Shown one piece after another: positions 6,029-24,506 of a stretch of DNA of 64,000 nucleotides (positions are counted from its first letter, which is position 1; each line of letters starts with the position of its first letter). A model generated the notes under the pieces. That model had not been told where the DNA came from and made no database searches. It saw only the letters and a program-made list of their open reading frames with translations. The position numbers and the translations under genes are program-made. This DNA is from Piromyces finnis finn (taxonomy: Eukaryota > Fungi > Neocallimastigomycota): NCBI GenBank assembly GCA_002104945.1, contig MCFH01000067.1:1-64000 (forward strand), written 5' to 3'.

Positions 6029-6340
6029 TAGGTTAGTTTTTACATATCATTTATATATAATTAGTAAAAAATAAAGATTTAACTAATTGTTTATTTTTTT
6101 TTTTTCTTTAATAAAAAGAACTTTATTATTTTGAATAAAATTAAAGAAATTTATAATCATGATATTAAATATATATAAATATATATATAAATAATTTTTT
6201 CTTTTCTCTTTTTTTTCTTCATTATATAAATTGTATTAAAAGTAAAAGTAAAATAAAATAAAAAATTAAATTTAAAAAATGAAGCTTTCATTGTATTTTT
6301 TTAAAAATATTAAAATATTTAATTACGTAATGTAATGTAT

Positions 6341-6822
6341 TGATACGGTAACACAAAATGCATTAAATATAAATTATTGTTTTACAATTTCTTAATACAT
6401 TTATTAATTATTTGTATACAAATGTATTACCATTAACATTTAATATAATTTATAATAATATAACAATAAAATATTACAAATAATTAAATGACAAAAATAA
6501 GTTTTTATATAGTAAAAATTATTGTTAAAAAGAGTGTGGAAACAATAAAGAAAAGAAAATATAAAAACGAGATTAAATTTGTCTAAATTGAAATGATTGT
6601 GTTAATAATAAATAATATTTTATAGAATAAATCTGGTGTTATTTTATTCTATATAAATATTATAAAATAATAAAACTATTAAAATTATAAGGACAAATTA
6701 AATTTATTTAATAAAACTAGTAGATATTGTTAAAGCTTGTACAATAACTGTCAAGATAAAACAATATAAGGTAACGAAGAAGTAGTTTAAAAAGTTGTAA
6801 CATAACTGCCAATTCTTTATCA
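6341..6822 (+). mobile_element. Solo-LTR-like unit U1, diverged relative of LTR-A
   Basis: Starts TGATAC, ends TTATCA. About 6488-6822 aligns by eye to 10020-10351 with many substitutions. Left boundary less certain because there is no A-run to its left. Confidence 0.65.
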
Positions 6823-6826
6823 AAAA

Positions 6827-7088
6827 TGATATATTTTCATAATAATAAAATATCAAATATTATTTATAATTGAAAAGCTCTCTCTCCTTTAATATCTTGT
6901 TCTTTATCACTGTTTATATATCTTTTCCTTCCTTATGTAACTAATTATTCTAATATATGTGCAACATTTGCATCATAATAATTTATACTATTATGGTTTA
7001 ATTATTATTATCATTACAATTTATAAAAGGATTAGATATTATTCGTAAAATATTTAAAATATTATATTTTTCTGTGCATCTTGTATCA
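6827..7088. mobile_element. Solo-LTR-like unit U2 (short; same family as U4)
   Basis: TGATAT...TTGTATCA, flanked by AAAA on both sides. About 6845-7088 matches 8375-8627. Confidence 0.65.
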
Positions 7089-7092
7089 AAAA

Positions 7093-7356
7093 TGATATAA
7101 TTTGATAATCTTAATTTTGAAGTTTACTTTAAAAAGTGATTATTATATTATACCTTTGATTATAACTATATAAGTTATATGGATTAGAATTTGAAATTGT
7201 TTTTATAAAAATTAATAAAATTGTTTTATTACAACACTAAATTATTTTATTAGAAACACTCGTTTTTCTAATATTTAAATTTTTAAAATTTTATTAAGTT
7301 ATTAAAATGATTATTAAAATTATAAAATTATTAACTAACTATATAATATTTTCTTT

Positions 7357-7389
<33 letters not shown>

Positions 7390-7906
7390 TAAAATAAGAA
7401 TATTTACATGTATTTATATTTTCTTTTAAACTTAAACTATTTACATTAAAATAATAAAATTAATAACTATTTACAATAAAAGTAATAAAAGTAATTAAAA
7501 ATAACAATAAAAGAAATAATTAAAAGTTAAAGAATATAGAAAGTTTTTTATTTTACAATTAATTAAAGTAATAATTATTTTTAATATTTTAATAAAAGTG
7601 TTTAATTATATTATTTTATAACATGAATTATTATATTTATTTACTTTTAAAGTGTAATTCACTAGTTATTAAATATTTAATTTAACAATTAATTTAACAA
7701 AAGTTATATATTTTGATCTCGATTAATTAAAGTTTATTATTTTTTTTTCAATAATCAAAATATATGCAGTGTCAAGGATTAATTTTATTTTAAAATTTTG
7801 GTAAAAGTAATTAATTAAACTATAACTTATTTTAAGTTACTTTTAGGGTTAACTTAAAAATCAGGCATAATAATAATTTTATATTTATTAATTTCATTAT
7901 TTATCA
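7093..7906. mobile_element. Solo-LTR-like unit U3 (same family as U7)
   Basis: TGATAT...TTTATCA. Aligns end to end with 10357-11188 at roughly 90% by eye. Confidence 0.7.
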
Positions 7907-7909
7907 CAA

Positions 7910-8627
7910 TGATGCAATATATTTCAAAGATACCATAAATAAAATATAATTGTGAACGTTAGCAATAGAGAATGATAGTTGAATAATATATTAGATAATA
8001 TTGTATTTATTTCTATTTTATAATAATAAAAATAAATAATAAGAATAAATAGTAAAAATAATAAATTTTATAATAATATAATTAAATAGATTTTGGTTTA
8101 AAGTTTCTTTATTTAATTATTATTATTATTATGATTATAACATTAATAACATTCAATACTAGTAGAATCGAAAGTTATTGTTTAATAAATATAAAATTAC
8201 TATTAATAATAAAATATAACTTTTCTGAAATAATAAAAATAAACAATAAATATTCTTTTCTTTTATAATTAATATTTTAAACTGAATTAAATATAATAAA
8301 TACTAAATACGTAATTATTAACTTAAAACTGACCTAAACTAGAACTATTAAAATAAAACTTATACTTAAAACTAAAATATCAAATATTATTTATAAATGA
8401 AAAGTTCTCTCTTCTTTAATATCTTGTTCTTTATCACTGTTTTTATATCTTTTCCTTTCTTGTGTAACTAATTATTCTAATATATATGCAACATTTGCAT
8501 CATAATAATTTATACTAATATAGTTTAATTATTATTATCATTAGTAATTAGTATACAATTTATAAAAGGATTAGATATTATTCGTAAGATATTTAAAATA
8601 TTATATTTTTCTGTGCATCTTGTATCA
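7910..8627. mobile_element. Solo-LTR-like unit U4
   Basis: Imperfect 8-bp terminal inverted repeat TGATGCAA...TTGTATCA. Its 3' part is shared with U2. Confidence 0.65.
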
Positions 8628-8631
8628 AAAA

Positions 8632-9725
8632 TGATGCGTTGACCGATGTATTTTTGAATAATATAATGTTTTTAGTAAGTAATAAATTCTATATTATTAT
8701 GATGAAACAATAAATTTAAAATAAAATAAAATATGTTTTATAATTAACAAATAATCACTCAAAACTCGAAAATAAACTTTTATTATGTTTTAAATTAAAT
8801 CTTTATTATATTTTATAATTTATTTATTATCTATTTATTGTTTTTTTTTATTCTCTACTTATTGTCCGATTTTTATGAAGAAGAATTTTATCTTCCTTTT
8901 ATACATTTTCATTTATTACATGTATTATTATTTTTAACTATTAAATATTATTATTACTATTGTTATTATTTATTAAAATTAAAAGAATAAATTAAAATTA
9001 TGTCTTAGTATTATAAAATATTATAGAATATTACTTATTTGATTTTCTTATTACTTCAAAATGTTTAAATTGAGAAAAATTATTATAAATTAACATTGAC
9101 TATCATTAAATGTATAATACCTTGAATAAAATAATTAAAATTTAAAATTAAAATAATATTAAATTAAAATTAAAATAAAATTAAGACAAAATTAAAATAT
9201 TAAAAGTATCAATTATTATAAGCACACATTTTATACAGAAACATAAAAGAGTTCTGTATTTTATCTTAAAATCGTTATTATTGTTCTATTTCCAGGTTTT
9301 AAGTTTATCATTTTTAGTAATAATTACTCAATTAGTTATTTATTAATTTATAAGTTTAAGAGAATTTCTAAAGAACACTTGGATAAAACACTAAAATTAA
9401 TAGTTTGATGTATATCATTTTATTTTTAGTTTATTTATTCATTTTTATTTATTTATTATTATTTTATTATTTTAGTACATTATTGGATTAAGTCGGTTTA
9501 TTTATTTAATAATTTATTTTATTATTATCACTATTAGGTCGTTTTTCCTCAGAATTTATTATAATAAAGAGAATATTATTTATTTAAGAAAAGGTTATAT
9601 TTTCATAAAATTATTATTCATTCATTTTTAAGGATTATTATCATTTATTTTTATTATAAGTTACTATGGGTTAAGTCGTGTTTATTCAGCTAGTTTTTAC
9701 TATGTTTTTATGGGAGTAGCGTATC
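8632..9725. mobile_element. Solo-LTR-like unit U5
   Basis: Imperfect 9-bp terminal inverted repeat TGATGCGTT...AGCGTATCA, flanked by AAAA and AAAAA. Confidence 0.6.
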
Positions 9726-9730
9726 AAAAA

Positions 9731-10351
9731 TGATAAATAATAATTATAAATATATTATACATTTGATATTAGTAGAAATTTTTATTATAAAATAATTATT
9801 AAATAATTTTATATAGTTTATTATAAAAATATAATTTACATAAAATCAAATATTTTATAAATTTATATATTTGATTGGGTTAAATTATAAAAATAATTTT
9901 TATTATAAAGAATAATAATAATTTTTAGTAGAAAATGAGAAGACTTAGATTATTAATAATAAGTTAAATTTTAATAATAGTTAATATAATTAATTAGTGA
10001 ATACATAATAATATTTAAAAGACAAAAATAAGTTTTTATATAATAAAAATTATTGTTAAAAAGAGCGTAAGAACAATAAATAAAAGAAAATATAAAAACG
10101 AAATTAAACTTGTCTAATTTGTAATTATTGTGTTAATAATAAATAATATTTTATAGAATAAATCTGGTGTTATTATTCTATATAAATATTATTAAAATAA
10201 TAAAACTATTAAAACTATAAAATAACTTAAAATAAATTAATAAAACTAGTAGATATTGTTAAAGCTCGTACAATAGCTGTCGAGATAAAACAATATAAGA
10301 TAACAGAAGAAGTAGTTAAAAAGTTATAATATAACTACCAATCCGTTATCA
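9731..10351 (+). mobile_element. Solo LTR of element A family (U6), opposite orientation to element A
   Basis: 621 bp, reverse complement of 11192-11812 with a few substitutions. Flanked by AAAAA on both sides. Confidence 0.92.
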
Positions 10352-10356
10352 AAAAA

Positions 10357-10629
10357 TGATATAATTTGATAATAATCTTAATTTTGAATTTTACTTCAAA
10401 AAGTGATTATTATATTATATCTTTTGTTATAACTATATAAGTTATATTGATTAAGATTTAAAATCGTTTTTTATAAAAATTAATAAAATTGTTTTGTTAA
10501 AACACTAAATTGTTTTATTAGAAACACTTGTTTTTCTAATATTTAAATATTTAAAATTTTTTATTTATTTAAGTATAAAAGTGATTATTAAAATTATAAA
10601 ATATTAATCTAACTATATAATATTTCTTT

Positions 10630-10668
<39 letters not shown>

Positions 10669-11188
10669 TAAAATAAGAATATTTACATGTATTTATATTT
10701 TCTTTTAAATTTAAACTATTTACATTAAAACAATAAAATTAATAACTATTTACAATAAAAGTAATAAAAGTAATTAGAAATAACAATAAAAGAAATAATT
10801 GAAAGTTAAAGAATATAAAAAGTTGTTTATTTTACAATTAATTAAAGTAATAATTATTTTTAATGTTTTAATAAAGGTGTTTAATTATATTATTTTATAA
10901 CATGAATTATTATATTTGTTTACTTTTAAAGTGTAATTTACTAACGAAGTTATTAAATATTTAATTTAACAATTAATTTAACAAAAGTTATATATTTTGA
11001 TCTCGATTAATTAAAGTTTATTATTTTCTTTCAATAATCAAAATATATGCAGTGTTTAGGATTAATTTTATTTAAGAATTTTGGTAAAGTACTTAATTAA
11101 ACTATAACTTGTTTTAAGTTACTTTTAGGGTTAACTTAAAAATCAGGTATAATAATAATTTTATATTTATTAATTTCATTATTTATCA
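10357..11188. mobile_element. Solo-LTR-like unit U7 (same family as U3)
   Basis: TGATAT...TTTATCA; homologous to 7093-7906. Confidence 0.7.
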
Positions 11189-11191
11189 AAA

Positions 11192-11812
11192 TGATAACGG
11201 ATTGGTAGTTATATTACAACTTTTTAACTACTTCTTCTGTTATCTTATATTGTTTTATCTCGACAGCTATTGTACGAGCTTTAACAATATCTACTAGTTT
11301 TATTAATTTATTTTATGCTATTTTATAGTTTTAATAGTTTTATTATTTAATAATATTTATATAGAATAATAACACCAGATTTATTCTATAAAATATTATT
11401 TATTATTAACACAATAATTACAAATTAGACAAGTTTAATTTCGTTTTTATATTTTCTTTTATTTATTGTTCTTACGCTCTTTTTAACAATAATTTTTATT
11501 ATATAAAAACTTATTTTTGTCTTTTTAAATATTATTATGTATTCACTAATTAATTATATTAACTATTATTAAAATTTAACTTATTATTAATAATCTAAGT
11601 CTTCCTATTTTCTACTAAAAATTATTATTATTCTTTATATTAAAAATTATTTTTATAATTTAACCCAATCAAATATATAAATTTATAAAATATTTGATTT
11701 TATGTAAATTATATTTTTATAATAAACTATATAAAATTATTTAATAATTATTTTATAATAAAATTTTCTACTAATATCAAATTTATAATATATTTATAAT
11801 TATTATTTATCA
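11192..11812 (-). repeat. 3' LTR of element A
   Basis: Direct repeat of 23505-24125; adjacent to the PPT. Confidence 0.95.
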
Positions 11813-11815
11813 AGA

Positions 11816-11826
11816 TTTCCTCCCCT
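11816..11826 (-). other. Polypurine tract of element A (AGGGGAGGAAA)
   Basis: Purine run 3 nt before the 3' LTR on the minus strand. Confidence 0.8.
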
Positions 11827-12142
11827 AAGATACGACTTAGTGGTAGCTGATAAAAGTATTCATAAATAATAATAAATATATAAGTTTTTGATATTTTTAT
11901 ACTAAATATTTGAAAATTTAAATTAAATTTTTTTTTTTTTTTTTTTTTATATATATGATAAAAATAATATAAAATAAAGTTTATAAAAAAAAATGATGAA
12001 AAATTTGAAAATTTTTATTAATAAAATTTTTTTTCAAAAAAAGTAAAAAAAATAAAATAGATGAGATAAAATTCGTCTTCAGTATATTAATATGTGTTTT
12101 TCTTGAAATTTATATAATAATCGCCATTTTTTTTATATGATT

Positions 12143-15100
12143 TTATAGAGAGGACAAATAGGGCTTCACATTTTTAATATGGACATTACGTTCTAATATC
12201 TTATGCGTGTCCAGTGTTTCTAGAACTAAAGTGTTGAATTTTGATACTTTCTTCACTTTAAATGGTCCTAAAAAGAATGGATCTAATTTTTTTCTACCTA
12301 TATATCTTACCAACACTAGATCATCTGGCTTGTACCGGTGTTGCATAGACTTTGCTGTTTCATTTCTTTGAAGCCAATAGTCGTGAGCTTGCTTGATATT
12401 TTCAGTAGCTTCTTGTACCCAATTCTGGTGTCTGACAAAACGTCTGAAATTGTATTCTTCGTCAGACTCATCCTTTTCTTTTGGAATATCTGGTAGCAAT
12501 ACGCTAAGAGGCCATAAGTCTTTTCTTCCATATAAGAGTTCGAAACTACTAAACCCTGTAACTTTCGAACGAGACGTACGCAGAGCCCATAAAGTTGCCG
12601 GAAGTATTTCGTCCCAATTTTCTTGATTTTTACATAAATGTCGAAGTATTTTTATTATTTCTCTATTTCTGTTTTCAACTTGTCCATTAGCTTCAGGGTG
12701 ATGTGGTGCAACGAATTGAACCCAGGAACCATATAAGTCTATCATTGTTTTTGTTATGTCCGAAGTGAACTGACTTCCATTATCAGTGACAATTATTTCT
12801 GGGACACCATGTCTTGCAAAGACGTCTTTTAAGAAATAAATAACGTCTTGACTTTCGATTCTCTTTAAGGGAGCGGCTTCAACCCATTTAGTAGTATAGT
12901 CTACTAAAACAATGATATATAAATTACCTCTATCTGTTAATGGTAGTGGTCCAACTATATCCAAACCAACTCTAACGAAGGGTCTTTCAACAGGACTTGA
13001 AATATTAGACAGGTTTTTAGGAATGGGTTTTGGACGGTAGCATTGACATTCTAAACATGTTTTAACGACTTTATTTACGTCGTTCCACATTCCTGGCCAA
13101 TAATATATTTCTTTTAATCTGGAAAGTGTTTTTTCAACACCTTCATGGCCGACAAGATGAGCCTTACGAATCAAGGAGAATTTTAAAGAGTCATCTTCAA
13201 TAACTTTTAAAAAGTTTCCAGATTTAGAGCGGTAAACAAGAGTACCATTTAAAAATGAATAGTTCTTCTTAACATATTCAATAATTTTGGGAGGAGCAAA
13301 GGTGGAAATATTATCTTCTTTGTCTTCTAAGATAGAATGAATAGAATTAATATTTAAATTTTGCGAAGAGGGCATACGGGACAAAGCATCAGCAAAAACA
13401 TTATTTTTACCTTTTTCATAAATGATGTCGACTCTAAATTCATTAAACTTGGCTATCCATCTAATATGTCTATCATTAGAAGGAATACTTGAAGTAAAGA
13501 AACCTACAAGTGGCTTATGGTCAGTGTATACTTTTACAACAAGAGGAGAAGCTGCAATATAGGAGCGAAATTTATTCAAAGCGAATAAAATAGCAATACC
13601 TTCTTTTTCAGTAACAGAATAACGCGTTTCAGCATCTTTAAGACATCTACTAACACAATAAATAGGAAACTCAATATCTAAAGAGTCAGAAGGCTGTAGA
13701 AGAACAGCGCCAACGGCATAAGAAGAAGCGTCAGTACGAATAATGAATTGTTTATTAGGGTCGGGATATTTTAAAATACTGGAGGAGCAAATAAAAGAAC
13801 GAAGTGTATGAAAGGCATCAGAATGGATATCTAACCAAATAAAACTAGCTTTAGGACTTGTAAGTTTATATAAACAACTTGAAATAGCAGCAAAGTTAGG
13901 AATAAATTTTCTATAGTAGCTAACTAAGCCAAGGAAGGACCTAAGTTGAGTGACGTTTTTAGGAGTGTTCCAAGAAGCTATAGCAAGAACTTTAGAAGGC
14001 ATAGGTTTAATACCATCTGCAGTAAGTACGTGACCAAGAACTTCGACGGAGTTTTTGCAAAAAGAACACTTATCAATATTAATAGAGAATTTATGCTCTC
14101 TTAGGATAATAAAAAGTTTTTCAAGGTCCTTTAAATGTTGTTTAAAGTTAGGAGAATAAACTAAAATATCATCCATGTAAACAAATAGACAAGTACCGAT
14201 AAGAGGCATAAGAATACGGTTCATCTCACGTTGGAAGGATGCGGGTGCATTAGTTAACCCGAATGGCATAACCTTAAAGTTAAAATTACCAAACTTAGTA
14301 GTGAATGCTGTCTTTTCGATATCTTTGCTATTCATTGGAATTTGATGAAAACCAGAAAAAAGGTCAATAGCAGAGAAATATTTTGCGCCATGAACAGATT
14401 CTAGTAGTTCATCAATAAATGGTAGAGCATACGCGTCTTTAATAGTAATTTGATTTAATTTTCTATAATCGACACACATACGCCATTTACCATTTTTCTT
14501 TTTCACCATAACAACAGGGAATGACCATGGTGAATGAGAAGGTTCAATGAGACCGTGTTTCAATAGTTTCGAAATCTCTTCTTTTAATGCTTGGGATTGA
14601 GCAAGAGATATCTTATAAGGTCTCAGTTTAATGGGTTTGGTGGATGTTAATTCAATAGAATGAGGTTCAGCATCAGCAACTGAAACATCATCAATGGAAT
14701 CGATTAAAACATCCCTATAATTTTTTATTAAAGAATGAAGTTGAATTTGTTCATCCTTTGAGATAATATTATCAATATCAGAAATATCTTTTAAGGAATT
14801 AATATTATTCATAATAGTAATATGATATAATTTATTTCCTTGCGATATGGAATCTGATGGTTGAGCAACCATAATAGAGGATCCATCAGTTTTCATATAT
14901 AAAGCGTCGTCATCAGGATCTATATATAGCCTATGATCCTTTTGTGACTGGCGCCCAAGTATGATATCATAGCAGGAATCTTCGTCTTCTAGGATCCAGA
15001 AGGTAGTACTTATTTTAAGCTTATCAAAACGAAGAACGAGACTTACTGCTTGATTAGTGGAGATGACTTGTTGGCTAGCTAGCTTGAAGAATGTTCTTTT

Positions 15101-15520
15101 AAAGTATTTAATTTTATGTTTCTTTGATATAATATCAAAGAAGGACTTAGTAATCACGTTGACATCAGAGCCTGTATCCACTAACACTCTTACAATATTG
15201 TTGTCAACAGAACCTATAACAGAAGCGATATTGACTTTATTAATGACGTTAATCTCATTACTAACATCAATGTTGTCAACACTATTGTTAACATTATTGT
15301 TATTATCATCACCATCGACATCACCTTCGTTGATAATATTAATAAATGAACTAATATCATCATCATCAAGATCCAAATTTTGAATGGCGTTTATTTTTCT
15401 AACGTCATTAGGATCAAGTTTTAAGCCTTTCGCACAAAGTCTTCTAATGATAGGGCTAACAGCAAAGAGTTGTGCAAAGGTAATACCAGCGTTGGTATTA
15501 TTGAGAGCATCATATACATC
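12143..15520 (-). CDS. pol: Element A pol, C-terminal part: aspartic protease, RT, RNase H, integrase
   Basis: VLVDTGSD protease, YMDD RT, RTDAS RNase H, HHCC plus D,D35E integrase and GPF motif. Frame is open up to the element B insertion point at 15520. Confidence 0.93.
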   Translation of the reverse strand, partial: DVYDALNNTNAGITFAQLFAVSPIIRRLCAKGLKLDPNDVRKINAIQNLDLDDDDISSFINIINEGDVDGDDNNNNVNNSVDNIDVSNEINVINKVNIASVIGSVDNNIVRVLVDTGSDVNVITKSFFDIISKKHKIKYFKRTFFKLASQQVISTNQAVSLVLRFDKLKISTTFWILEDEDSCYDIILGRQSQKDHRLYIDPDDDALYMKTDGSSIMVAQPSDSISQGNKLYHITIMNNINSLKDISDIDNIISKDEQIQLHSLIKNYRDVLIDSIDDVSVADAEPHSIELTSTKPIKLRPYKISLAQSQALKEEISKLLKHGLIEPSHSPWSFPVVMVKKKNGKWRMCVDYRKLNQITIKDAYALPFIDELLESVHGAKYFSAIDLFSGFHQIPMNSKDIEKTAFTTKFGNFNFKVMPFGLTNAPASFQREMNRILMPLIGTCLFVYMDDILVYSPNFKQHLKDLEKLFIILREHKFSINIDKCSFCKNSVEVLGHVLTADGIKPMPSKVLAIASWNTPKNVTQLRSFLGLVSYYRKFIPNFAAISSCLYKLTSPKASFIWLDIHSDAFHTLRSFICSSSILKYPDPNKQFIIRTDASSYAVGAVLLQPSDSLDIEFPIYCVSRCLKDAETRYSVTEKEGIAILFALNKFRSYIAASPLVVKVYTDHKPLVGFFTSSIPSNDRHIRWIAKFNEFRVDIIYEKGKNNVFADALSRMPSSQNLNINSIHSILEDKEDNISTFAPPKIIEYVKKNYSFLNGTLVYRSKSGNFLKVIEDDSLKFSLIRKAHLVGHEGVEKTLSRLKEIYYWPGMWNDVNKVVKTCLECQCYRPKPIPKNLSNISSPVERPFVRVGLDIVGPLPLTDRGNLYIIVLVDYTTKWVEAAPLKRIESQDVIYFLKDVFARHGVPEIIVTDNGSQFTSDITKTMIDLYGSWVQFVAPHHPEANGQVENRNREIIKILRHLCKNQENWDEILPATLWALRTSRSKVTGFSSFELLYGRKDLWPLSVLLPDIPKEKDESDEEYNFRRFVRHQNWVQEATENIKQAHDYWLQRNETAKSMQHRYKPDDLVLVRYIGRKKLDPFFLGPFKVKKVSKFNTLVLETLDTHKILERNVHIKNVKPYLSSL

Positions 15521-15525
15521 ATACT

Positions 15526-16131
15526 TGTAAAGTCAGACACTAAACCGAATAGATTAGGATATCTAACCTATTACAATAACACAAAAATTTGAGAAATAAA
15601 ATAAAAAATTGTTTTATAAAATATCTTTTATTATAATAGAATTTTAATAATAACAATTACATCGATAAAATGATGAAAAATATCTTCTATTTATATTTTT
15701 CCTAAATACATTTATATTATATTATAACTATTTATTTCTTATATATTATTATTTAAAATCTACACTAAAATCTTAATTATTAATAAATATTTAAACTATA
15801 ACTATTTTTAGTAAAATACAATTGGCAATTCAAATTAAGTACCATTTAATTTGAATATGTGCCCATGTATTATTGATATATTAATCATTTATTATTTATC
15901 TATTTCTATAAAAAAACAATACTAAAACTAGGGATTTAAATTGAGAATATTAATTTACTTGTTAAACATTAAAAATAAATTAATAATTTATTTTGTTTTA
16001 AACTTTAATTATTAATAAATAAATTATGTCTCATTTTCTTTTTCTGAATATAATTTGTGTAACTTAAACAATAATACTTGTGGCTTAAGTTACATTAAAG
16101 ATATCAAACAGAGGCGTTTGATGTCTTTACA
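15526..16131 (-). repeat. 3' LTR of element B
   Basis: 606-bp direct repeat of 21272-21878. Confidence 0.95.
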
Positions 16132-16167
16132 ATCTCTCTCTCTAAGTCGAGCTCCTGCGAGATTAAT

Positions 16168-19100
16168 TTATAAGGAATCTTTTCTCGAAGGAATTTCAAT
16201 TACAAATGGTTGGTATCTGTGCTTGATTAGATTACCACCTTTATTCTTTCTTATTCTCATGGAGGAGTCATTCAACTTATGTTTTGACTTTTTAGAGTTT
16301 CTTTCGAACTCTTGTATTAATTGTTTGTCCGGGATCTGATCTTCAGAAACCCAAGTGGATTTGTCAAATCCTTTCCACGATAACTTATAAAATGTCTCAC
16401 CATTAACAGATTTCATCTTCTCAATTTTTTCTGGAATTTTTTCAATTAAATCTGTGCTAAGATGAATATTTCTTTTCCTACTATTAGACCTATCTATAAA
16501 CTCGTTTTCAAAGTATGGTTCTAACAATGAGACATGAAAGACTGGATGACATCTCATTGTCTTTGGGAGTTTCAATTTAAAAGCGAGAGAACTAACTTTT
16601 TCAATTATTTCAAATGGACCAAGCATTTGAGGTGCTAATTTCTTCTTCAAGTTAGTTCTCGGAGAATCTTTCAATAACCATACCTTCTTTCCCACTTCAA
16701 ATTCCGGGGGACTCATTCTTTTCATATCGGCATATTTCTTATATGTTTCTTTTGCTTTTTCTAAGTTTCCTTTTAATAATTTAAAGTTTTCACTCATATC
16801 AATTACTCTTTGTTCAGCTCTACTAGGTCTATCATTAGCCGGGATTTCCAAGCTGAACTTTGGATGAAAACCATAATTAGCAAAGAATGGGGATTGATTT
16901 ATAGATTGTTGTAAAGTATTATTATAAGCAAATTCAGCAAACGGGATAAGATCAACCCAGTTATTCTGCTTTTTATTGATAAAACAACGGAAATATTGTT
17001 CTAATATGCCGTTCACCCTCTCCGTTTGACCATCTGTCTGCGGATGGTTAGCAGTTGACAATGAATGATTGATATTAAGAAGGTCACAAAGTCTTGACCA
17101 GAAATCAGAAGTAAATTGCGAGCCTCTATCAGAAATAATGGAATTAGGAAGACCATGCAAACGGAAGACATTGGCAATAAAAGCATCAGCAGCAATTGAA
17201 GCAGTAGGAAGACAACGTAAAGGAATGGCGTGAGCAAATTTAGTAAATCTATCGACAACAACCATAAGTGTAGTCATATCTCTGGACTTAGGAAGATCAA
17301 CAATAAAGTCGATAGAGATATCAGACCAAGGCCTACTAGGAGTGTCCAAAGGGGATAACAATCCATAAGGCTTATGTCTAGGGACTTTGGATTTGCAACA
17401 AGTCACGCAAGATTTAATAAAGGATTTAACATCTGAATGAAATCTTGGCCACCAAAAGTTTCTTGAAATAAGTTCGACAGTTTTCTTAATGCCGAAATGG
17501 CCAGCAGCAACAGAATCATGATGGAGTTCCAAAACTCTAGTCCTAAGAGATTTAGGAACATAAATAAGATTATTAAATAACAAAAATCCTTCACCGTCAA
17601 TAATAACTTTATCAATATTTTTAATAGGTGCATTACTTGTAGAACCATTCATTTTAAATTGAACAATGGAATTATACAAATCGTCATTTTTAAGTTCTGA
17701 TAAAATAGAATCTATTAAAGGTTTGTTATCACTATGATGAAGCGAAATAGTAAGACAAGAAACATCAGAGTTAATAACATTCACTAAATGATCACTTCTA
17801 CGAGACAGAATGTCAGGCTTACCAGATTTCTTACCAGCTCTATAAATGAGTTTAAAGTCAAATCTGGATAAGAACAAATTCCATCTAATTTGTCTCTGAG
17901 ATAACATTTCAGGTTTTCTAGGAAATGTTAAGTTCTTGTGATCGGTATAAATTATGAACTGATGGCGTGCACCCTCTAAGTAATGACGCCATTCTTCAAG
18001 TGCAACTATAATGGCTAACAGTTCCTTGTCATATATAGGATAGTTTCTTTGACAACTCGTCAAACTTTTAGAAAGAAATGCAATGGGATGTAATTTGCCG
18101 TCAAACTCTTGAGAGAGAATAGCACCGACAGCATAATTACTAGCATCAGTTTCAACAATAAATTGTTTATTACTATCCGCATGTTTCAGAATAGGAGCTG
18201 ACGTGAACAAAGTTTTTAATAAATTAAAAGCGTCCTGATCTTCTTTCACCCAGTTAAAAGCAACATTTTTTCTAGTGAGCTTGTGAAGAGGGTTTGCAAT
18301 TTTAGCAAAGTCTTTAATAAAAATTCTGTAATAGTTACATAGACCAATAAAAGACTGAACCTCTTTAACATTCTTGGGAACCGGCCAATCGAGAATTGCT
18401 TTAACTTTATTTTCATCCATTTGCAACCCATCTTTTGAAATGACATAACCAAGAAAAGTGGTTTTCTTAACATCAAACTCACATTTTTCTAATTTAACAT
18501 AAAGATTATTTTCGAGTAGTTTCTTAAGTACCTTTTTAACATGCTCGTGATGCTCTTCGATATTATTAGAATAAATAAGGATATCATCAATATATGAGAT
18601 AACAAAATCATCTAAATAATCACTAAGAACATCGTTAATAAAGTGTTGAAAGGTTGCAGGTGCATTCTTTAATCCAAAAGGCATAACCAGATATTCAAAA
18701 TGACCATACCTAGTACGAAAAGCCGTTTTGTATTCATCACCTTCTTTAATACGAACAAGATTATAAGCGGATTTAAGGTCTAGTTTGGTAAAAATCTTAG
18801 CATTTTTCACCCTATCCAAAAGGTCACTTATTAAAGGTAAAGGATATGAATTACGAATTGTAATATCATTCAACCTTCTATAATCAATACAAAGTCTTAA
18901 GGAACCGTCCTTCTTTTTAACAAACAAAATTGGGGCACCAGCAGGAGACGATGATTTCCTAATGAAACCTTTATTTAAATTTTCATCTATATACTTTTTA
19001 AGTTCCTCTCTTTCAACTTCAGTTAATGGATACAAAGGTCCATAAAATAAAGTTGAATCATCCTTAAGCTTGATTTCGCAATCATAAGGTCTATGAGGAG

Positions 19101-20772
19101 GTAACACTTCACAATTTTTTTCATTAAACACTTCACTAAATTCTAAATATTGGGTTGGTACGGAGACCAATTTATCTTTATTAATATCCTTTTCATTATT
19201 ATTATTATTATTACTACATGATTCATTATTATTATTACATGTTTCATTAATTTTCGTTACAATACATTTAACCTTTTTATTAAAACTAATATATTCCTCA
19301 TCGCTATCATCTTCATCATTAATGGTTCTAACAAGGCGGCCTTTAATATACTCCTTTTCTTCAGGGTTTTTTAAAGGGGCTGTAGAGACAGATTTTACTG
19401 TTTTAGTTAAACTTCGGTCAAGAACATCATGATCTAGCTGGCTTTTTTGAGACTTCTTTCTTTGCTTCCTTCTTCTTTTACCTTGGTTACAGTGTCTAGC
19501 ACAATAACCGGAACTAAAAGCAATTTTCTTAGGATCATAAAAAGCTTCAGGATTATGCTTTTTGATCCAAGGTAACCCAAGAATAACATCAACTCCAGGA
19601 ACCTTTAAGCTATACAGCTGAATAACTTCATAATGGTTCCTATATCTTAGCATACATTTCTCCGACTTTTCCCAGACTCTGGAAATTCCATCATTGACTC
19701 CGGAAACACGGAATGGGTCAATATTCTCAAATTTAATGCCAAGATCCTCAGCAATATCCGGGTTAATAAAATTTAACTCGGAACCAGAATCAATCAACAC
19801 CTTGATTTTTGCTTCGGGGACCTCGTTAGTACTTAAATAAAAGTCAATAAAATTCAAATCATCTTTTTTGTCCATTACTCCTACTTTATAAATTTTCGGT
19901 TCAACAATCTTAGGAGTTTTTTCTTTAATTATTCTAAAAACCTTCTTGGGTTTTACTCTATTTGGACAATTAAATTTAAAATGTCCAGGTTTTTTACACA
20001 AAAAACAAACCCCCTTTCTCCTTTCTTCTTCAAACGTTCTTGGGCTCTCATCATAATTATTACTAGTTCCTTGAATATTTACATAACGTTTACGCTTCTT
20101 ATCAGCACTAATTCTAAAAACGTCAACATCCATAGGATCATTAGCCCTTCTATTATTAAAATAAAACTCACTCAAAGAATTCCTTTTCATCATATCTTCA
20201 ACTAATATTGTTGAGGATATTAAATGTTCCATAGATGACGGGTTTGTTTCGACAAACGCCAATTTCTCTCTAAGTAATGGATTTAAACCTTTCAGAAACA
20301 TATAGATCTTAGCACTTTCGTTAAAGTTGGAATTTTGGCTAACTCGTTGAAACTCGGTGATATAATCAACTACTTGACCAAGTTTTCTTTGTCTAATGTT
20401 ATCGAGTTTACCGTTTGCAACAACAGTGTCATATCGATCACTACCGAAATTAGCTCTGAGGCGATCTATAAATTCATCATAATGGTTCAATACATTACTA
20501 TTATTCCTCATAAGCGATGATGATCATTCCAGGGGTCTACCAGAGAAGTAGGAAATAACGAAATCAACCCGGACGCGATCTGTATTGTACAGTGCCGGTC
20601 GAGTTCGAAATACCAATTCTACTCTAGTTAAAAACCCATCTAAATCTCTATGTCTACCAGTAAACAACGGAGGAGCATTGATAATGTTCCCTGGATTTAC
20701 TGTAGAACCACCACCTCTTTCTTCCATTTCTTCTAAATTTAAATTATCAAAAGTATTAATTAATTCCTCCAA
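16168..20772 (-). pseudogene. gag-pol: Element B single-frame gag-pol with one in-frame TGA at 20524-20526
   Basis: ORFs 20524-20772 and 16168-20511 share a frame (GRPLE-TGA-SSSLMRNNS). Contains CCHC knuckle CFLCKKPGHFKFNC, protease IDSGS, RT YIDD, RNase H, integrase and a C-terminal chromodomain-like segment (IEKMKSVNGETFYKLSWKGFDKSTWVSEDQI). Confidence 0.88.
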
Positions 20773-20845
20773 CTCTAATACAAAAACACATAAAATTAAA
20801 ATTAAGTAAAATAACGAGGGTTTCTTACTATTATTTCAAGTAAGT

Positions 20846-20884
<39 letters not shown>

Positions 20885-21260
20885 CGTCTTCTAACAATAA
20901 GTTAATAAGTTATTACAGACTCTCTCTGTATAATTACAGTGTCGAACAAGTTATTAACTAATGTTAATTCCAAACTTCAGCCGTAGTAATAGTCCTTTTC
21001 AAATACGAATTATTCGGTGAAGCGTTCCGATTGATTAAAGTATTCTTGTAGTCCGGTAGAATATCCCAAAGTTCTTGATAATCTTCCTTAGGTAGCCTTA
21101 GCAAAATATTCAAAAATTTCTTCTATTTCTTCAAGTAGAGTTTTCCAAAAAGTTCTTATATTTCTTCTAGTAGAATTCTTCTATTTGTCCTAGTAGAATC
21201 TTCCCAAAAGTTCTTCTATTTCTTCTTGATACCCTAACGTATTCGTAACTATCTGTTTAG

Positions 21261-21271
21261 GTAATTGTTAT
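21261..21271 (-). other. Self-priming PBS of element B (ATAACAATTAC)
   Basis: Abuts the 5' LTR, lacks TGG, and is perfectly complementary over 11 nt to LTR positions 21397-21407. Confidence 0.8.
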
Positions 21272-21878
21272 TGTAAAGTCAGACACTAAACCGAATAGAT
21301 TAGGATATCTAACCTATTACAATAACACAAAAATTTGAGAAATAAAATAAAAAAATTGTTTTATAAAATATCTTTTATTATAATAGAATTTTAATAATAA
21401 CAATTACATCGATAAAATGATGAAAAATATCTTCTATTTATATTTTTCCTAAATACATTTATATTATATTATAACTATTTATTTCTTATATATTATTATT
21501 TAAAATCTACACTAAAATCTTAATTATTAATAAATATTTAAACTATAACTATTTTTAGTAAAATACAATTGGCAATTCAAATTAAGTACCATTTAATTTG
21601 AATATGTGCCCATGTATTATTGATATATTAATCATTTATTATTTATCTATTTCTATAAAAAAACAATACTAAAACTAGGGATTTAAATTGAGAATATTAA
21701 TTTACTTGTTAAACATTAAAAATAAATTAATAATTTATTTTGTTTTAAACTTTAATTATTAATAAATAAATTATGTCTCATTTTCTTTTTCTGAATATAA
21801 TTTGTGTAACTTAAACAATAATACTTGTGGCTTAAGTTACATTAAAGATATCAAACAGAGGCGTTTGATGTCTTTACA
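21272..21878 (-). repeat. 5' LTR of element B
   Basis: 607 bp; TATAAAT on the minus strand at about 21436-21442, roughly 30 nt upstream of the predicted start at 21407. Confidence 0.95.
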
Positions 21879-22540
21879 ATACTCCTTATTTTTGCCAAGC
21901 ATAATAATAGAACGTAAGAAGTCGTAATAGTTTCCTTTCAGCGACTTCTTACTTCCAATAACTTCTTCCTCTATATCATCTTGATTACTAGAGATATCCG
22001 GACCAGTTCTCCTTTTGTTTCTGGCTTCTTTATTTTTCTTCTTGGCAGAAGAGATATTCTTGCCTGCAATTACCGAGGGGTCTAGGATGTCCAGGCGGGA
22101 AGTAGTGGTATGAAAATTTGAATTTTTCTCGTTTTGAATTTCTTGCTGTTCTTTCATCTGAGTGGCCTTTGTGTGTATTGGCAAGGGGTTTTCTCGAAGT
22201 TTCTTTTTCTTCGACTGAGTCACGTGATCCTCATCTTCACTTTCATCACTTTCTTCAGAACTTTTCCTCTTGAATGCGTAAATAAGGTTTTCGATGTCCT
22301 TATCATCGATTGTATTTGTCACGTGATTTTGTGTAACATCATCCTTATCTATGTCTTTGATTAGATCATCCACCAAAGGGTCAGAGAATTTTTCTTCAGA
22401 ATTTGAAAATTTTTCTGTTTTATGTGAGTCACGTGTTTCATCAACATAAACTTGCTCGTTTATGTTATTGATATTGTGGGTTTGGTTATTATCAATTTTG
22501 GAGTTAGAAGGGGAAGATTGAGAACTTCCCCCATTTAATT
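21879..22540 (-). CDS. pol: Element A pol, N-terminal part (-1 frame relative to gag)
   Basis: Open frame from the slippery site to the B insertion. Removing B and one TSD joins ...KNKEY to DVYDALNNTNAG... in frame. Confidence 0.8.
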
Positions 22541-22544
22541 TAAA
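22510..22544 (-). other. -1 programmed ribosomal frameshift signal of element A
   Basis: Slippery heptamer T TTA AAT (22538-22544), 6-nt spacer, hairpin GGGGAAG-N8-CTTCCCC (22510-22531). Confidence 0.75.
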
Positions 22545-23404
22545 TGGTTTTGGGAAAGGAGAGTAGCAATAAACTTATTCATATCTGACATTTCATTAGG
22601 GCAAAAACGAGCATCATGTCCTCTCTGATTACAGCGGTGACAGACATGAATTTTCATCTGGGCAAAACTCTTGGTCAGAGCCTCTAGATCGGATTCCTTA
22701 ACGTCTTTTGTACCTCCTTGATTTTTATTGTTATTACTACTACTACTGTTATTATTACTATTATTATTATTATAAGGCGATTTTTCATTGTTGGTAGTAG
22801 TTCTTTTCTTAAAGGAGCTATTGCTTTTGTTTCTTTTATAGTTATAGTCGGTTTCGTCATCACTTTCATAAGCTGAGATGGTTTCTTCTGCTGTGATGGC
22901 GATTCTCATAGCGTCCTTTAAGGTTTTTGGTTGTTTATTAATAAGAGAATTCATAATGGGAGTTCTCCTATTAAAGGCTTTAATGTAAAGGAAAACAAGT
23001 CTTTCTTCAGAAGGCTTATCCCTTTCTTTAATTTCTTTCAAGAGGTCGTTAAAAGAACGGTTAAATTCTCTAACAGAGCTTTTGTTTACTTTTATTTTTT
23101 CTAACTTATTTAGGTTTCTATTAGAGGTTTTATCATCCTCAAATAAGTTAGATATTTTATTGATAAATTCATTATAAGATAGGGATCTATCTTCATAATA
23201 AATATCACTACAAAGATCCTTTGAGTTACCGGTAGTAGCAAGCAAAGCAATTCTCTTCTTTTCTTTTTCAGAAAGAGCTAAGTCTTCTAAGATATCTTCA
23301 AGTTCCATTTTCCATCTGAAGAACTTAGTATCTTTCTTGCCAAGAGGGCTTATTTCTTTAGCCATACTAGCGGCTCTTTCAAAATTGTTTTTATTTTCAG
23401 TCAT
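22535..23404 (-). CDS. gag: Element A Gag (289 aa)
   Basis: Directly after the PBS; CCHC knuckle CHRCNQRGHDARFC near the C-terminus. Confidence 0.9.
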   Translation of the reverse strand: MTENKNNFERAASMAKEISPLGKKDTKFFRWKMELEDILEDLALSEKEKKRIALLATTGNSKDLCSDIYYEDRSLSYNEFINKISNLFEDDKTSNRNLNKLEKIKVNKSSVREFNRSFNDLLKEIKERDKPSEERLVFLYIKAFNRRTPIMNSLINKQPKTLKDAMRIAITAEETISAYESDDETDYNYKRNKSNSSFKKRTTTNNEKSPYNNNNSNNNSSSSNNNKNQGGTKDVKESDLEALTKSFAQMKIHVCHRCNQRGHDARFCPNEMSDMNKFIATLLSQNHLN

Positions 23405-23490
23405 ATTTAGTAAATAAATAAGATAATTATACTAAATATACTAATTAATAGGAATTATTTAAATTATCGGCTTTCCCACGGGACGACTGA

Positions 23491-23502
23491 GGTTCTCCAC
23501 CA
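23491..23502 (-). other. tRNA primer-binding site of element A (TGGTGGAGAACC), probably tRNA-Ala
   Basis: Begins 2 nt after the 5' LTR. Complementary to a tRNA 3' end ...UUCUCCACCA, which fits an Ala acceptor stem with U70. Confidence 0.7.
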
Positions 23503-23504
23503 CT

Positions 23505-24125
23505 TGATAACGGATTGGTAGTTATATTACAACTTTTTAACTACTTCTTCTGTTATCTTATATTGTTTTATCTCGACAGCTATTGTACGAGCTTTAACAA
23601 TATCTACTAGTTTTATTAATTTATTTTAAGCTATTTTATAGTTTTAATAGTTTTATTATTTAATAATATTTATATAGAATAATAACACCAGATTTATTCT
23701 ATAAAATATTATTTATTATTAACACAATAATTACAAATTAGACAAGTTTAATTTCGTTTTTATATTTTCTTTTATTTATTGTTCTTACGCTCTTTTTAAC
23801 AATAATTTTTATTATATAAAAACTTATTTTTGTCTTTTTAAATATTATTATGTATTCACTAATTAATTATATTAACTATTATTAAAATTTAACTTATTAT
23901 TAATAATCTAAGTCTTCCTATTTTCTACTAAAAATTATTATTATTCTTTATATTAAAAATTATTTTTATAATTTAACCCAATCAAATATATAAATTTATA
24001 AAATATTTGATTTTATGTAAATTATATTTTTATAATAAACTATATAAAATTATTTAATAATTATTTTATAATAAAATTTTCTACTAATATCAAATTTATA
24101 ATATATTTATAATTATTATTTATCA
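23505..24125 (-). repeat. 5' LTR of element A
   Basis: 621-bp direct repeat of 11192-11812. Confidence 0.95.
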
Positions 24126-24138
24126 AAAAATTTCAATA

Positions 24139-24231
24139 GCTCGTGTAGCCTAGAGGTTTAAGGCGTCGTGCTTATAAGGGTGTACCTCTTATGCAACGCG
24201 AAGATCGCGGGTTCGACCCCCGCCATGAGCA
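24139..24231 (+). tRNA. trnI-UAU: tRNA-Ile (anticodon TAT) with a 19-nt intron (24177-24195)
   Basis: Acceptor stem GCTCGTG/CATGAGC, anticodon stem TCGTG/CGCGA, loop CT-TAT-A with the intron after position 37, T-arm GCGGG-TTCGACC-CCCGC, followed by T-runs. Confidence 0.95.
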
Positions 24232-24506
24232 ATATATTTTTAATAATTTTTTAAAATTATATATTTGAATTGATTTAATTTTTCATCTAAATAGAAGATT
24301 AAATAATAATAATAATAATAATATACGTTCAAGAAAATAATGATTTTGAATTTAAAAGATTAAATAATAATTATTTTGATATTATTTCTTATATTGAAGA
24401 ATTAAGTAAAACTAATATAAGACTATTTCCATTTTATAGATCAGATAAATATAAAGAATTTAGGTTAATTCAAGACTATATCTACTCTCATTTTGATAAA
24501 AATATT

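Follow-up and report, generated by a model that had tools for sequence, protein, structure and literature searches.

The array of repeat units found upstream of a single tRNA-Ile gene in the anaerobic gut fungus Piromyces finnis raises the question of how these units came to lie end to end, and whether their order preserves the order of their arrival. We examined a window of 64,000 nucleotides (contig MCFH01000067.1) together with the genomic copies of the repeats it contains. We consider it very likely that the stack consists of LTR-retrotransposon insertions of several families, built outward from one tRNA-Ile(UAU) gene.

Anatomy of the stack

A direct reading of the sequence divides positions 6341-11188 into seven abutting TGAT...ATCA units, U1 to U7 (Table 1), separated by spacers of 3-5 bases that are almost all A and followed by a 12.9-kb element, AAAAA, 8 bp and the tRNA-Ile(UAU) gene. 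From distal to proximal, the spacers after ATCA read AAAA, AAAA, CAA, AAAA, AAAA, AAAAA and AAA. The coordinates and termini of the units given in the original prediction, as well as the succession of element A, AAAAA, 8 bp and tRNA-Ile, were confirmed, except that U5 had been ended at 9725 instead of 9726; the spacer between U5 and U6 is AAAA and not AAAAA. The motif ATCA-N3-5-TGAT occurs 21 times in the window versus 8.7 +/- 3.0 in shuffled sequences, and seven of these occurrences fall inside the 4.4-kb stack, where about 0.6 would be expected, all seven at repeat-unit boundaries. The tRNA gene has the anticodon loop CUUAUA and an intron of about 20 nt, and reads as Ile(UAU); the alternative Ala identity proposed by ARAGORN is unlikely since position 3:70 is U:A.

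Table 1. Coordinates of the features of the stack, of elements A and B and of the tRNA gene in the window
Feature	Position	Strand	Remarks
U1, old partial A-superfamily LTR	6341..6822	+	only bases 93-482 homologous to A-type LTRs
U2, truncated LTR	6827..7088	.	3' 249 bp of a U4-type LTR after 13 unmatched bases
U3, solo LTR, older copy of the U3/U7 family	7093..7906	+	at least 36 genomic copies span 1-814, 89-93%
U4, solo LTR, U4 family	7910..8627	.	at least 37 genomic copies span 1-718, 84-90%
U5, solo LTR, older copy of the U5 family	8632..9726	-	at least 40 copies span 1-1095, 86-95%
U6, young solo LTR, A family, inverted relative to element A	9731..10351	+	differs from four other genomic copies by about 3 mismatches
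U7, young solo LTR, U3/U7 family	10357..11188	+	at least 40 copies span 1-832, 92-98%
Element A 3' LTR, 621 bp	11192..11812	-	1 mismatch/621 vs 5' LTR
Element A pol (RT, RNase H, integrase)	12143..15376	-	Pfam; ends at the integrase C-terminal domain
Element B, LTR retrotransposon nested in A	15526..21878	-	LTRs 15526-16131 and 21272-21878
Element B ORF, gag-PR-RT-RH-IN, 1447 aa	16168-20511	-	
Element A gag, Ty3-type capsid	22535..23404	-	PF19259 (Ty3_capsid), E=3.9e-11
Element A primer-binding site	23491..23502	-	TGGTGGAGAACC (element strand); 2 nt separate it from the 5' LTR
Element A 5' LTR	23505..24125	-	abuts the tRNA upstream region
Target region	24126..24138	+	AAAAA (24126-24130; one A in addition to the repeatedly used 4-bp target), then TTTCAATA (24131-24138); 13 bp from LTR end to tRNA
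tRNA-Ile(UAU) gene with intron	24139..24231	+	55 bits vs Rfam tRNA
T5 terminator of the tRNA-Ile gene	24237-24241		

U3 to U7 are LTRs of dispersed retrotransposon families; U1 and U2 each represent only part of an LTR. The boundaries of U3-U7 coincide with the ends of dozens of dispersed genomic copies, at least 38 copies each of the U5, U7/U3 and U4 types running from the first to the last base of the unit. The proposed family groupings hold: U6, predicted to be a solo LTR of element A, differs from A's LTR by 1.1% substitutions and lies in inverted orientation, U3 differs from U7 by 4.8%, and U2 from the tail of U4 likewise by 4.8%, all 39 genomic matches of U2 beginning at its base 14. U7 carries a length-variable (ATA)n run, and this microsatellite makes up most of the difference among U7-type copies. 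The grouping of U1 with U6 and A stands in part: U1 shows 11.4% substitutions relative to U6 over 385 bp, which is part of its length only, the homology starts only at base 93, and none of the genome matches to U1 covers its bases 1-52.

That the units would also occur as paired LTRs of coding elements proved right for the U3/U7, U4 and U5 types. Same-strand pairs lie about 7.6 kb apart for U7-type and 7.3-7.9 kb apart for U4-type LTRs, while U5-type copies form same-strand pairs as well as tandem arrays with a 5.57-kb period. At locus L031, a U7-type LTR is the 5' LTR and directly adjoins a 1188-aa PR-RT-RNaseH-IN ORF; an in-frame stop separates the ORF at the gag position from pol. A U5-type LTR at L017, from which the sense strand of U5 was deduced, and a U4-related LTR at L029 each adjoin a pol C-terminus.

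Element A and the nested element B

Element A is a 6,576-bp Ty3-like element with gag, pol, PBS and PPT that carries a nested element B of 6.35 kb. Paired TG...CA LTRs, a target duplication, the order of gag and pol, the primer-binding site and the polypurine tract place it among Ty3/gypsy (Metaviridae) elements. The polypurine tract AGGGGAGGAAA abuts the 3' LTR on its inner side, and the primer-binding site adjoins the LTR in other A-family copies too. In pol, Pfam domains follow the order RVT_1, RT_RNaseH, Integrase_H2C2 and rve, and the best solved-structure match is the Ty3 intasome protein 7q5b (E=1e-101). The alignment to Ty3 stops at Ty3 residue 1444, four residues before the stop of A's pol; going by the estimated start of Ty3 IN within the polyprotein, this residue lies at about the CTD end, and the Ty3 CHD spans IN residues 446-511. 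The integrase of element A has no chromodomain, and no ORF of at least 30 aa lies between the pol stop and the LTR. The two LTRs of A differ at one site, as had been read at first sight, and the family comprises at least 40 LTR copies at 98-100% identity; it is recently active. Element B, which the original prediction does not mention, is unrelated to A, is flanked by the 5-bp duplication ATACT and has LTRs that differ by one 1-bp indel.

Targeting of tRNA genes

The predicted link between insertions and tRNA genes was borne out beyond this locus. For eight A-family insertions of independent origin, the LTR end is 13-18 bp away from the 5' end of a tRNA gene; the genes differ, comprising those for Ser, Cys, Thr, Gly, Trp and Ile, and four of the insertions are in divergent and four in tandem orientation. 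Within the window, U6 and element A are themselves oppositely oriented. Nearly all of the approximately 14 sampled independent tRNA-Arg or Glu-Arg units have an LTR terminus 11-22 bp upstream, and six of nine paired-LTR elements, the youngest ones, directly adjoin a tRNA gene. Judging from the coordinates of genomic LTR copies, LTRs abut each other with gaps of 3-9 bp (mode 4) at no fewer than 20 other loci, on many contigs and in different family combinations. Every one of the 17 A-family insertions examined shows a perfect 4-bp duplication, and 5 bp fits only homopolymers. It had been proposed that an A-run was re-duplicated each time: the duplication is real and 4 bp long, but the A-run is a local feature, duplications elsewhere being TTAT, CTTT, AAAT, TTGT, ATAT, CATT, TCGT, TTTA and GAAA. 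About half of the sampled A-family insertions have no recognisable tRNA neighbour, some lying between two LTRs and a few in unique DNA, and Rfam detected no 5S or U6 gene within 1.5 kb of 16 such tRNA-less loci. At L008, a solo A-family LTR directly borders a tRNA-like sequence, which contains a GGTTCGACCCC B-box and was called by neither tool.

Very probably, several Ty3/gypsy-type families integrate upstream of Pol III genes, at some 10-20 bp from the mature 5' end, their integrase being presumably tethered, by analogy with Ty3, to TFIIIB at the start site. Because the position of TFIIIB is measured from the internal promoter of the tRNA gene, a new insertion would land between the tRNA and the previous insertion, and older units would move outward with each arrival, in what we infer to be a strictly proximal order. 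At each insertion the 4-bp staggered cut would fall, to within 1 bp, on one and the same A-run, and this re-use would explain why every spacer reads AAA(A)(A). Most elements would later have been reduced to solo LTRs through LTR-LTR recombination, element A being the probable last arrival, still full length and subsequently struck by element B. Serial insertion by several Ty3-like families, as first suggested, is thus supported by family membership, tRNA adjacency and the divergence gradient described below.

Age order and alternative explanations

From the proximal to the distal end of the stack, the best non-self identities are 100, 98, 100, 95, 90, 93, 91 and 91%. The expected rise of divergence with distance from the tRNA gene was therefore recovered (Spearman -0.81, p=0.015), and in two of three within-family comparisons the younger copy lies nearer the tRNA, U4 and U2 being about equal. 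The claim that the stack is a chronological record must nevertheless be qualified. The target is a homopolymer, and the duplications therefore give no reading of the order of events; nor can U7 and U6, which occupy positions 2 and 3 and are of the same young age, be ranked against each other. The putative left edge of U1 at 6341 has no A-run or matching duplication on its outer side, and U2 is, like U1, a fragment; it follows that deletions have altered the record, which is not lossless. Locus L035 casts doubt on a strict order: an A LTR of the 99% class, flanked by a perfect ATAG duplication, is found there at a distance of 1.75 kb from the tRNA gene, and on its tRNA side lies an A-like LTR with no more than 94% identity to any of the sampled copies. 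This arrangement does not fit easily with strict proximal-only insertion.

The L035 arrangement, a young A LTR lying between two LTRs with the older-looking one on the tRNA side, would be expected if integrases recognised existing LTR termini (ATCA-NNNN-TGAT resembles a two-LTR circle junction) irrespective of the tRNA gene; in that case new units would enter the interior of a stack, and position would carry no information on age. The duplicated ACAA of A in the L017-L021 group, which takes in the final three bases of the G-type LTR next to it, and the several A copies that have an LTR as neighbour on either side (at L027 and L029, and U6 in the window) point in the same direction. However, eight A insertions abut a tRNA and have on that side the unique tRNA leader and not an LTR, six of the nine youngest paired-LTR elements are tRNA-adjacent, and interior positions are to be expected once other young families, such as the U7-type and G-type at 99-100% identity, insert later. 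Moreover, the apparently old neighbour at L005 turned out to be a young subfamily, and L035 may resolve likewise. Taken together, we regard targeting of LTR junctions in place of tRNA genes as unlikely. There is a small chance that the A-type integrase, in addition to Pol III start sites, uses LTR-LTR junctions, as look-alikes of the two-LTR-circle junction, as secondary targets; if so, a stack would provide the seed for its own growth and might persist or expand even without an adjacent tRNA gene, and position would be only a loose clock.

A region made entirely of repeats also invites the suspicion of mis-assembled dispersed repeats, or of segmental or tandem duplication in place of serial insertion, and segmental duplications do exist in this genome, flanks being common to L017/L018/L019, to L035/L046 and to L041/L047. 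Nonetheless, such an origin is highly improbable for units that belong to at least four unrelated families and have exact canonical ends, with the same junction type (3-9-bp gaps) recurring in varied family combinations at 20 or more loci spread over many contigs, and element A flanked by a proper 4-bp duplication. A preference for oligo-A sites with the tRNA gene incidental, which the A-run spacers of this stack would suggest, is hardly conceivable and effectively refuted by the varied duplications elsewhere (TTAT, CTTT, etc.), the constant feature being the distance to the tRNA gene. Oligo-A is, moreover, ubiquitous in a 79% A+T genome, and the window nevertheless holds no other LTRs of these families.

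Comparison with known systems

Stepwise insertion beside the tRNA gene, our preferred reading, invokes a kind of mechanism that is already known, and the stack is the expected outcome of Pol III start-site targeting of the Ty3/Tj1/DGLT-A type. The Metaviridae element Ty3 of Saccharomyces cerevisiae inserts where Pol III transcription starts (PMC8632968; PMC5911963), with a 5-bp duplication (PMC8632968). In common with it, the A family has its genes in the order gag(Ty3 capsid)-PR-RT-RNaseH-IN and LTRs with TG...CA termini, inserts in both orientations at roughly a dozen bases before the mature 5' end of tRNAs, and leaves solo LTRs upstream of tRNA genes. It differs in its 4-bp duplication and in an integrase that ends at the C-terminal SH3-like domain, lacking the chromodomain that contacts Brf1 in Ty3. 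Furthermore, many families share the target at once here, stacks are 8 or more units deep, and copies are far more numerous, a single family already counting over 40 near-identical LTRs, whereas yeast has 42 Ty3 LTRs.

Among further yeasts, Tj1 (Schizosaccharomyces japonicus), Tca8/beta, Tyl3, Ylt1 and Tyl6 are Ty3/gypsy elements whose insertions precede the tRNA start site by 1-10 bp (PMC5911963 Table 1). Tj1 resembles the U7-type element of L031 in having an in-frame stop before pol; the hosts of these elements are all Ascomycota, in contrast to the Neocallimastigomycota considered here. In Dictyostelium, the Ty3/gypsy element DGLT-A lies about 15 bp upstream of tRNA genes, lacks a chromodomain and persists mostly as solo LTRs, and later insertions displace earlier ones at the same tRNA gene (PMC5006619), all of which resembles the present stack. 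While DGLT-A counts about 20 copies and is seemingly inactive, several families are recently active in this genome, their LTR pairs sharing 99.8-100% identity, and almost every tRNA gene sampled is occupied. We found no published description of such stacks in anaerobic gut fungi; they provide a clean new example, in an early-diverging fungus with a very AT-rich genome, of the tRNA-gene targeting known from yeast Ty3.

The stack had also been likened to an array of repeats, spacers and leader. Like CRISPR arrays, it shows polarised addition beside a fixed "leader" and short repeats between inserts; unlike theirs, its "repeats" are target duplications of 3-5 bp. Nothing in the window suggests either acquisition machinery or a read-out of stored units, and the picture is an analogy only and carries no functional meaning: the choice of integration site is enough to account for the structure.

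Another parallel might be sought in nested-transposon chronologies, in which insertions are ordered by which element interrupts which and relative position encodes age. Element B inside A is nesting of this classical kind, whereas the units of the stack lie side by side at one re-used site.

Seven LTR units abut one another upstream of a tRNA gene

The original prediction divided 6341-11188 of the window into seven abutting units, U1 (the most distal) to U7, followed by a Ty3-like full-length element (element A) next to a tRNA gene. Our direct reading of 6200-11400 and 23300-24500 and a script check both agree with this parse; six of the units keep their coordinates and only the end of U5 is displaced, from 9725 to 9726. 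From distal to proximal the spacers read AAAA, AAAA, CAA, AAAA, AAAA, AAAAA and AAA, the last one between U7 and element A, and on the other side element A is followed by AAAAA, by TTTCAATA and then by the tRNA gene. The latter reaches 55 bits by Rfam and, since its anticodon loop reads CUUAUA and is followed by an intron of about 20 nt, we assign it as tRNA-Ile(UAU); the U:A at the 3:70 pair makes the alternative Ala call by ARAGORN unlikely. A T5 run lies 3' of the gene at 24237-24241. Junctions of the form ATCA-N3-5-TGAT occur 21 times in the window versus 8.7 +/- 3.0 in shuffles, and a third of them (7/21) fall within the 4.4 kb of the stack. Further upstream, an uninterrupted ORF of 1965 aa (131-6028, plus strand) stops about 310 bp short of the stack, and the gap between this ORF and the tRNA-Ile gene would be about 330 bp if the stack were removed. 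All-vs-all BLAST of 50 loci agrees with the window ends of A, U1, U3, U6 and U7, the other stacks being too sparsely covered for reliable decomposition by this boundary calling.

Features of the stack in the window, and genomic copies of the unit types
Feature	Position	Strand	Description	Best non-self identity (%)	Genomic copies	Same-strand pairs
U1	6341-6822		begins TGAT, ends ATCA	91 (partial)		
U2	6827-7088		begins TGAT, ends ATCA	91		
U3	7093-7906		begins TGAT, ends ATCA	93	see U7	see U7
U4	7910-8627		begins TGAT, ends ATCA	90	U4 type: at least 37, over bases 1-718	7.3-7.9 kb
U5	8632-9726		begins TGAT, ends ATCA	95	U5 type: at least 40, over bases 1-1095	5.57 kb
U6	9731-10351		begins TGAT, ends ATCA	100		
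U7	10357-11188		begins TGAT, ends ATCA	98	U7/U3 type: at least 40, over bases 1-832	about 7.6 kb
Element A	11192-24125			100		
Element A LTRs	11192-11812 and 23505-24125		621 bp each, one site different		at least 40, at 98-100%	5,955 bp (intact)
Element A primer-binding site		minus	TGGTGGAGAACC, 2 nt from LTR			
Element A gag		minus	Ty3 capsid domain			
Element A pol		minus	RT, RNase H and integrase domains			
Element A polypurine tract			directly against 3' LTR			
Element B	15526-21878		splits element A gag-pol; 5-bp duplication ATACT			
tRNA gene	24139-24231					

Among solved structures, element A pol matches best the Ty3 Gag-Pol in 7q5b, the Ty3-TFIIIB intasome (E=1e-101). Once the nested element B is subtracted, element A measures 6,576 bp, exactly as do the intact copies found elsewhere. 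Element B carries LTRs of 606 and 607 bp (TGTAAAG...CTTTACA, one indel apart) around a single gag-PR-RT-RH-IN ORF of 1447 aa. B-type LTRs at two other loci, L033 (in a pol) and L042, also lie within other elements, and the family does not appear to target tRNA genes. A 4.5-kb derivative of element A (L012/L013, C46:908781-913306) combines A-type LTRs that are 99% identical with a gag that is only 81% identical and a pol of which just an N-terminal part is left (76% identical, residues 41-189 of A pol). Many LTR pairs in the A-type copy listings show its spacing of about 3.9 kb; with so many copies, the derivative probably depends on A for its mobilisation as a non-autonomous element.

Most units are LTRs of mobile families

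Searching the assembly (56.5 Mb, 232 contigs) for the units, which had all been taken for LTRs of mobile families, returned full-length genomic copies for U3 to U7, while U1 and U2 proved to be only fragments. Indeed, homology of U2 to U4-type LTRs is confined to their last 249 bp, and A-type LTR homology begins at base 93 of U1, the first 52 bases of which are reached by no copy. The genomic copies end where the units had been drawn; therefore, the chosen edges are those of mobile units. U6 is a solo LTR of the A family, opposite in orientation to A and with about three mismatches from four other copies.

Coding sequences expected behind the units were also recovered next to some of the LTR types, the pairing of U4-, U5- and U7-type LTRs resting on coordinates and on the few interiors present in the sampled loci. 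At L031, a complete U7-type LTR is followed on the same strand by a 256-aa ORF, an in-frame stop and an open PR-RT-RNaseH-IN frame of 1188 aa. As the gag-position and pol ORFs share one frame and are separated by a single stop codon (3568-3570), their arrangement suggests expression by read-through and is similar to that of Tj1, for which read-through has been proposed. At L017 a U5-type LTR directly adjoins a pol C-terminus that shares 40% identity with that of A, and at L029 a U4-related LTR lies near another such C-terminus, 43% identical. Beside the 5' LTR of the U7-type element, a GC-rich leader (L031 4230-4340) contains GGGGTTCGAACCC, a B-box/T-arm-like motif, and could be either Pol III-like or a tRNA-like structure for priming. 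U5-type LTRs also recur every 5.57 kb or so on one strand, three or four in succession, at C79:829244-848220 and C74:9348-21612; these runs look like tandem LTR-internal-LTR-internal arrays with LTRs in common. Within U3/U7-type LTRs, an (ATA)n microsatellite (7340-7390 and 10630-10680 in the window) differs in length among copies; the greater part of the 2-3% by which young ones seem to differ is explained by it.

Order and age of the insertions

Assuming a 4-bp cut within the A5 run, the stack is peelable starting at the tRNA side: the insertion of A duplicated AAAA, with the terminal A of U7 as one of the four bases, and the same site would have been re-used, give or take 1 bp, by each insertion. 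The flanks of U7, U6, U5, U3 and U2 each fit an AAAA duplication, and the left copy at U4 is ACAA, with one base changed. Peeling works back to U2 and fails at U1, whose outer flank carries no matching duplication. Such peeling fits the re-use of one site, the order of insertion being one that a homopolymer target cannot prove.

Sequence divergence was expected to grow with distance from the tRNA gene, and it does so over the eight units (Spearman rho -0.81, p=0.015 for identity; rho 0.95 with substitution levels from bit scores, which are rough estimates). Within the A superfamily the younger members are nearer to the tRNA (A, then U6, then U1), and likewise U3 is older than U7; U4 and U2 are of about the same age, and U6 and U7 are equally young, so that their order is not separable. 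An age-order violation by U7 (97-98%) with respect to U6 (100%) was considered and rejected, since the U7 difference is mostly one length change of the microsatellite; its substitutions are estimated from bit scores at no more than 0.6%. Taken as a proxy for age, this gradient supports the serial order independently of the duplications.

Three cases raised the question of whether LTR junctions themselves attract integration, as a minority mechanism. At L005 a young LTR of the G-type family lies distal to a U5-type LTR scored at 88%, and this violation vanished as the supposedly old neighbour has copies elsewhere that match it at 99%. In the L035 stretch 3617-4863 (C8:45397-46643), a perfect ATAG duplication flanks an A LTR of the 99% class that is 1.75 kb away from the tRNA; its neighbours are a G-type LTR and, on the tRNA side, an A-like LTR whose identity to the sampled copies nowhere exceeds 94%. 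In the L017-L021 group, the duplicated ACAA of A takes in the last three bases of the adjacent LTR. Both cases leave room for such a mechanism, but they are also explicable by later insertion of other young families. Overall, our reading confirms the original observation and supports serial insertion as its interpretation. Nevertheless, since U1 and U2 are fragments and several neighbouring units of L035 lack matching duplications, as same-family LTR recombination would cause, the stacks are edited rather than intact records.

tRNA genes are the recurrent target

Comparison of both flanks for 17 A-family insertions revealed a perfect 4-bp duplication in every one, of varying sequence (TTAT, CTTT, AAAT, TCGT, TTTA, TTGT, ATAT, CATT, GAAA and similar others); a 5-bp reading fits homopolymers only. 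Among the sampled A loci, eight independent insertions have a tRNA 5' end 13-18 bp from the LTR end, beside genes for Ile, Ser (three), Cys, Thr, Gly and Trp, with four insertions in each orientation. A rough first-look count puts the tRNA candidates at about 2,900 over 56 Mb, which gives each insertion a probability of about 3 in 10,000 of hitting such an interval by chance. Conversely, we picked 20 tRNA-Arg(UCU) genes on tRNA score alone, representing about 14 independent loci: an LTR terminus (...ATCA, ...TTACA or ...TAACA) lies 11-22 bp upstream of nearly all monocistronic tRNA-Arg genes and Glu-Arg pairs, and in two cases an LTR lies within the upstream tRNA-Glu. Targeting of tRNA genes, as predicted, is borne out from both directions, and with LTRs beside nearly every sampled gene, the stretch ahead of these genes to which TFIIIB binds is now LTR-derived. 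LTR-LTR junctions likewise recur across the genome: coordinate listings give at least 20 further abutments, separated by 3-9 bp (mode 4), that involve many contigs and many combinations of families.

The LTR families that end next to the tRNA genes are not all alike, and the sampled pols split into an A-like and a B-like group. Members of the B-like clade, which includes the U7 type, are about 45% identical to B, and the G type (LTR of 496 bp, copies 99-100% identical, inserted at -11/-12 with a 5-bp duplication) seems to fall within it as well. Two or more pol lineages use one target site.

Roughly one in two sampled A insertions is without a recognisable adjacent tRNA; at 16 such loci Rfam (gathering and E<=1) detected no other Pol III gene. 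ARAGORN at relaxed threshold returned only noise. At one locus, L008 (C157:616802-620422), an A solo LTR with an ATAT duplication abuts a tRNA-like stretch comprising a D-loop-like part, GGTTAAGGCG, and a B-box, GGTTCGACCCC; neither ARAGORN nor Rfam calls this stretch, a possible target formed by a degenerate tRNA or by the head of a SINE.

Comparison with known tRNA-targeting elements

Ty3 inserts 2-3 bp ahead of the start sites of Pol III genes with a 5-bp duplication; its integrase contacts TBP through the C-terminal domain and Brf1 through a vestigial chromodomain at IN residues 446-511 (PMC8632968). Targeting akin to that of Ty3 has been described for Tj1, Tca8, Tyl3, Ylt1 and Tyl6 (PMC5911963) and for DGLT-A, in which the chromodomain is absent (PMC5006619). 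Element A resembles Ty3 in geometry of integration, whereas the A family makes a 4-bp duplication and its integrase has no chromodomain: it aligns to that of Ty3 through the putative end of the C-terminal domain and stops four residues further on, with no other ORF between the pol stop and the LTR. Owing to the short duplication and to an integrase that stops near the putative end of the C-terminal domain, element A can be described as Ty3-like geometry minus two Ty3-specific features. The DGLT-A paper also observes that, at one tRNA gene, later insertions come to lie upstream of earlier ones, the distance of which they obscure (PMC5006619). The locus represents neither a functional array nor a new mechanism. 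It is a neat and unusually deep example, one good example among stacks that recur throughout the genome and hence not unique, and some of its differences from Ty3 merit specialist attention.

In a full-text literature search, no paper tied retrotransposons to tRNA genes in Neocallimastigomycota beyond passing mentions, and LTR elements in Piromyces likewise figured only in passing mentions. Our data carry Ty3-style targeting of Pol III start sites beyond ascomycete yeasts and dictyostelids, into an early-diverging and extremely AT-rich fungal lineage. With two or more pol lineages at one target site, the A type (4 bp, no integrase chromodomain) and the B-like clade (apparently including the 5-bp G type), this fungal lineage provides a natural setting in which to ask what surface of the integrase is really required to find TFIIIB. 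Moreover, the stacks provide a relative time-line of family activity, of use for dating transposon bursts in these genomes.

Further features of the tRNA loci

Pairs of tRNA-Glu(UUC) and tRNA-Arg(UCU) genes 9-10 bp apart occur at L033, L036, L039, L049, L050, L037/L038 and L045, and look dicistronic. At L037/L038 an insertion of about 0.9 kb lies within tRNA-Glu, and at L045 an LTR ends in the T-arm of tRNA-Glu, about 27 bp upstream of the Arg gene. Finally, the same tRNA-plus-LTR flanks are found on other contigs, or inverted on one contig, at L017/L018/L019, L035/L046, L041/L047, L034/L040 and L036/L039; these identical flanks indicate that segmental duplications carry whole stacks together with their tRNA genes, and such duplications may contribute to the very high, if rough, count of tRNA candidates.
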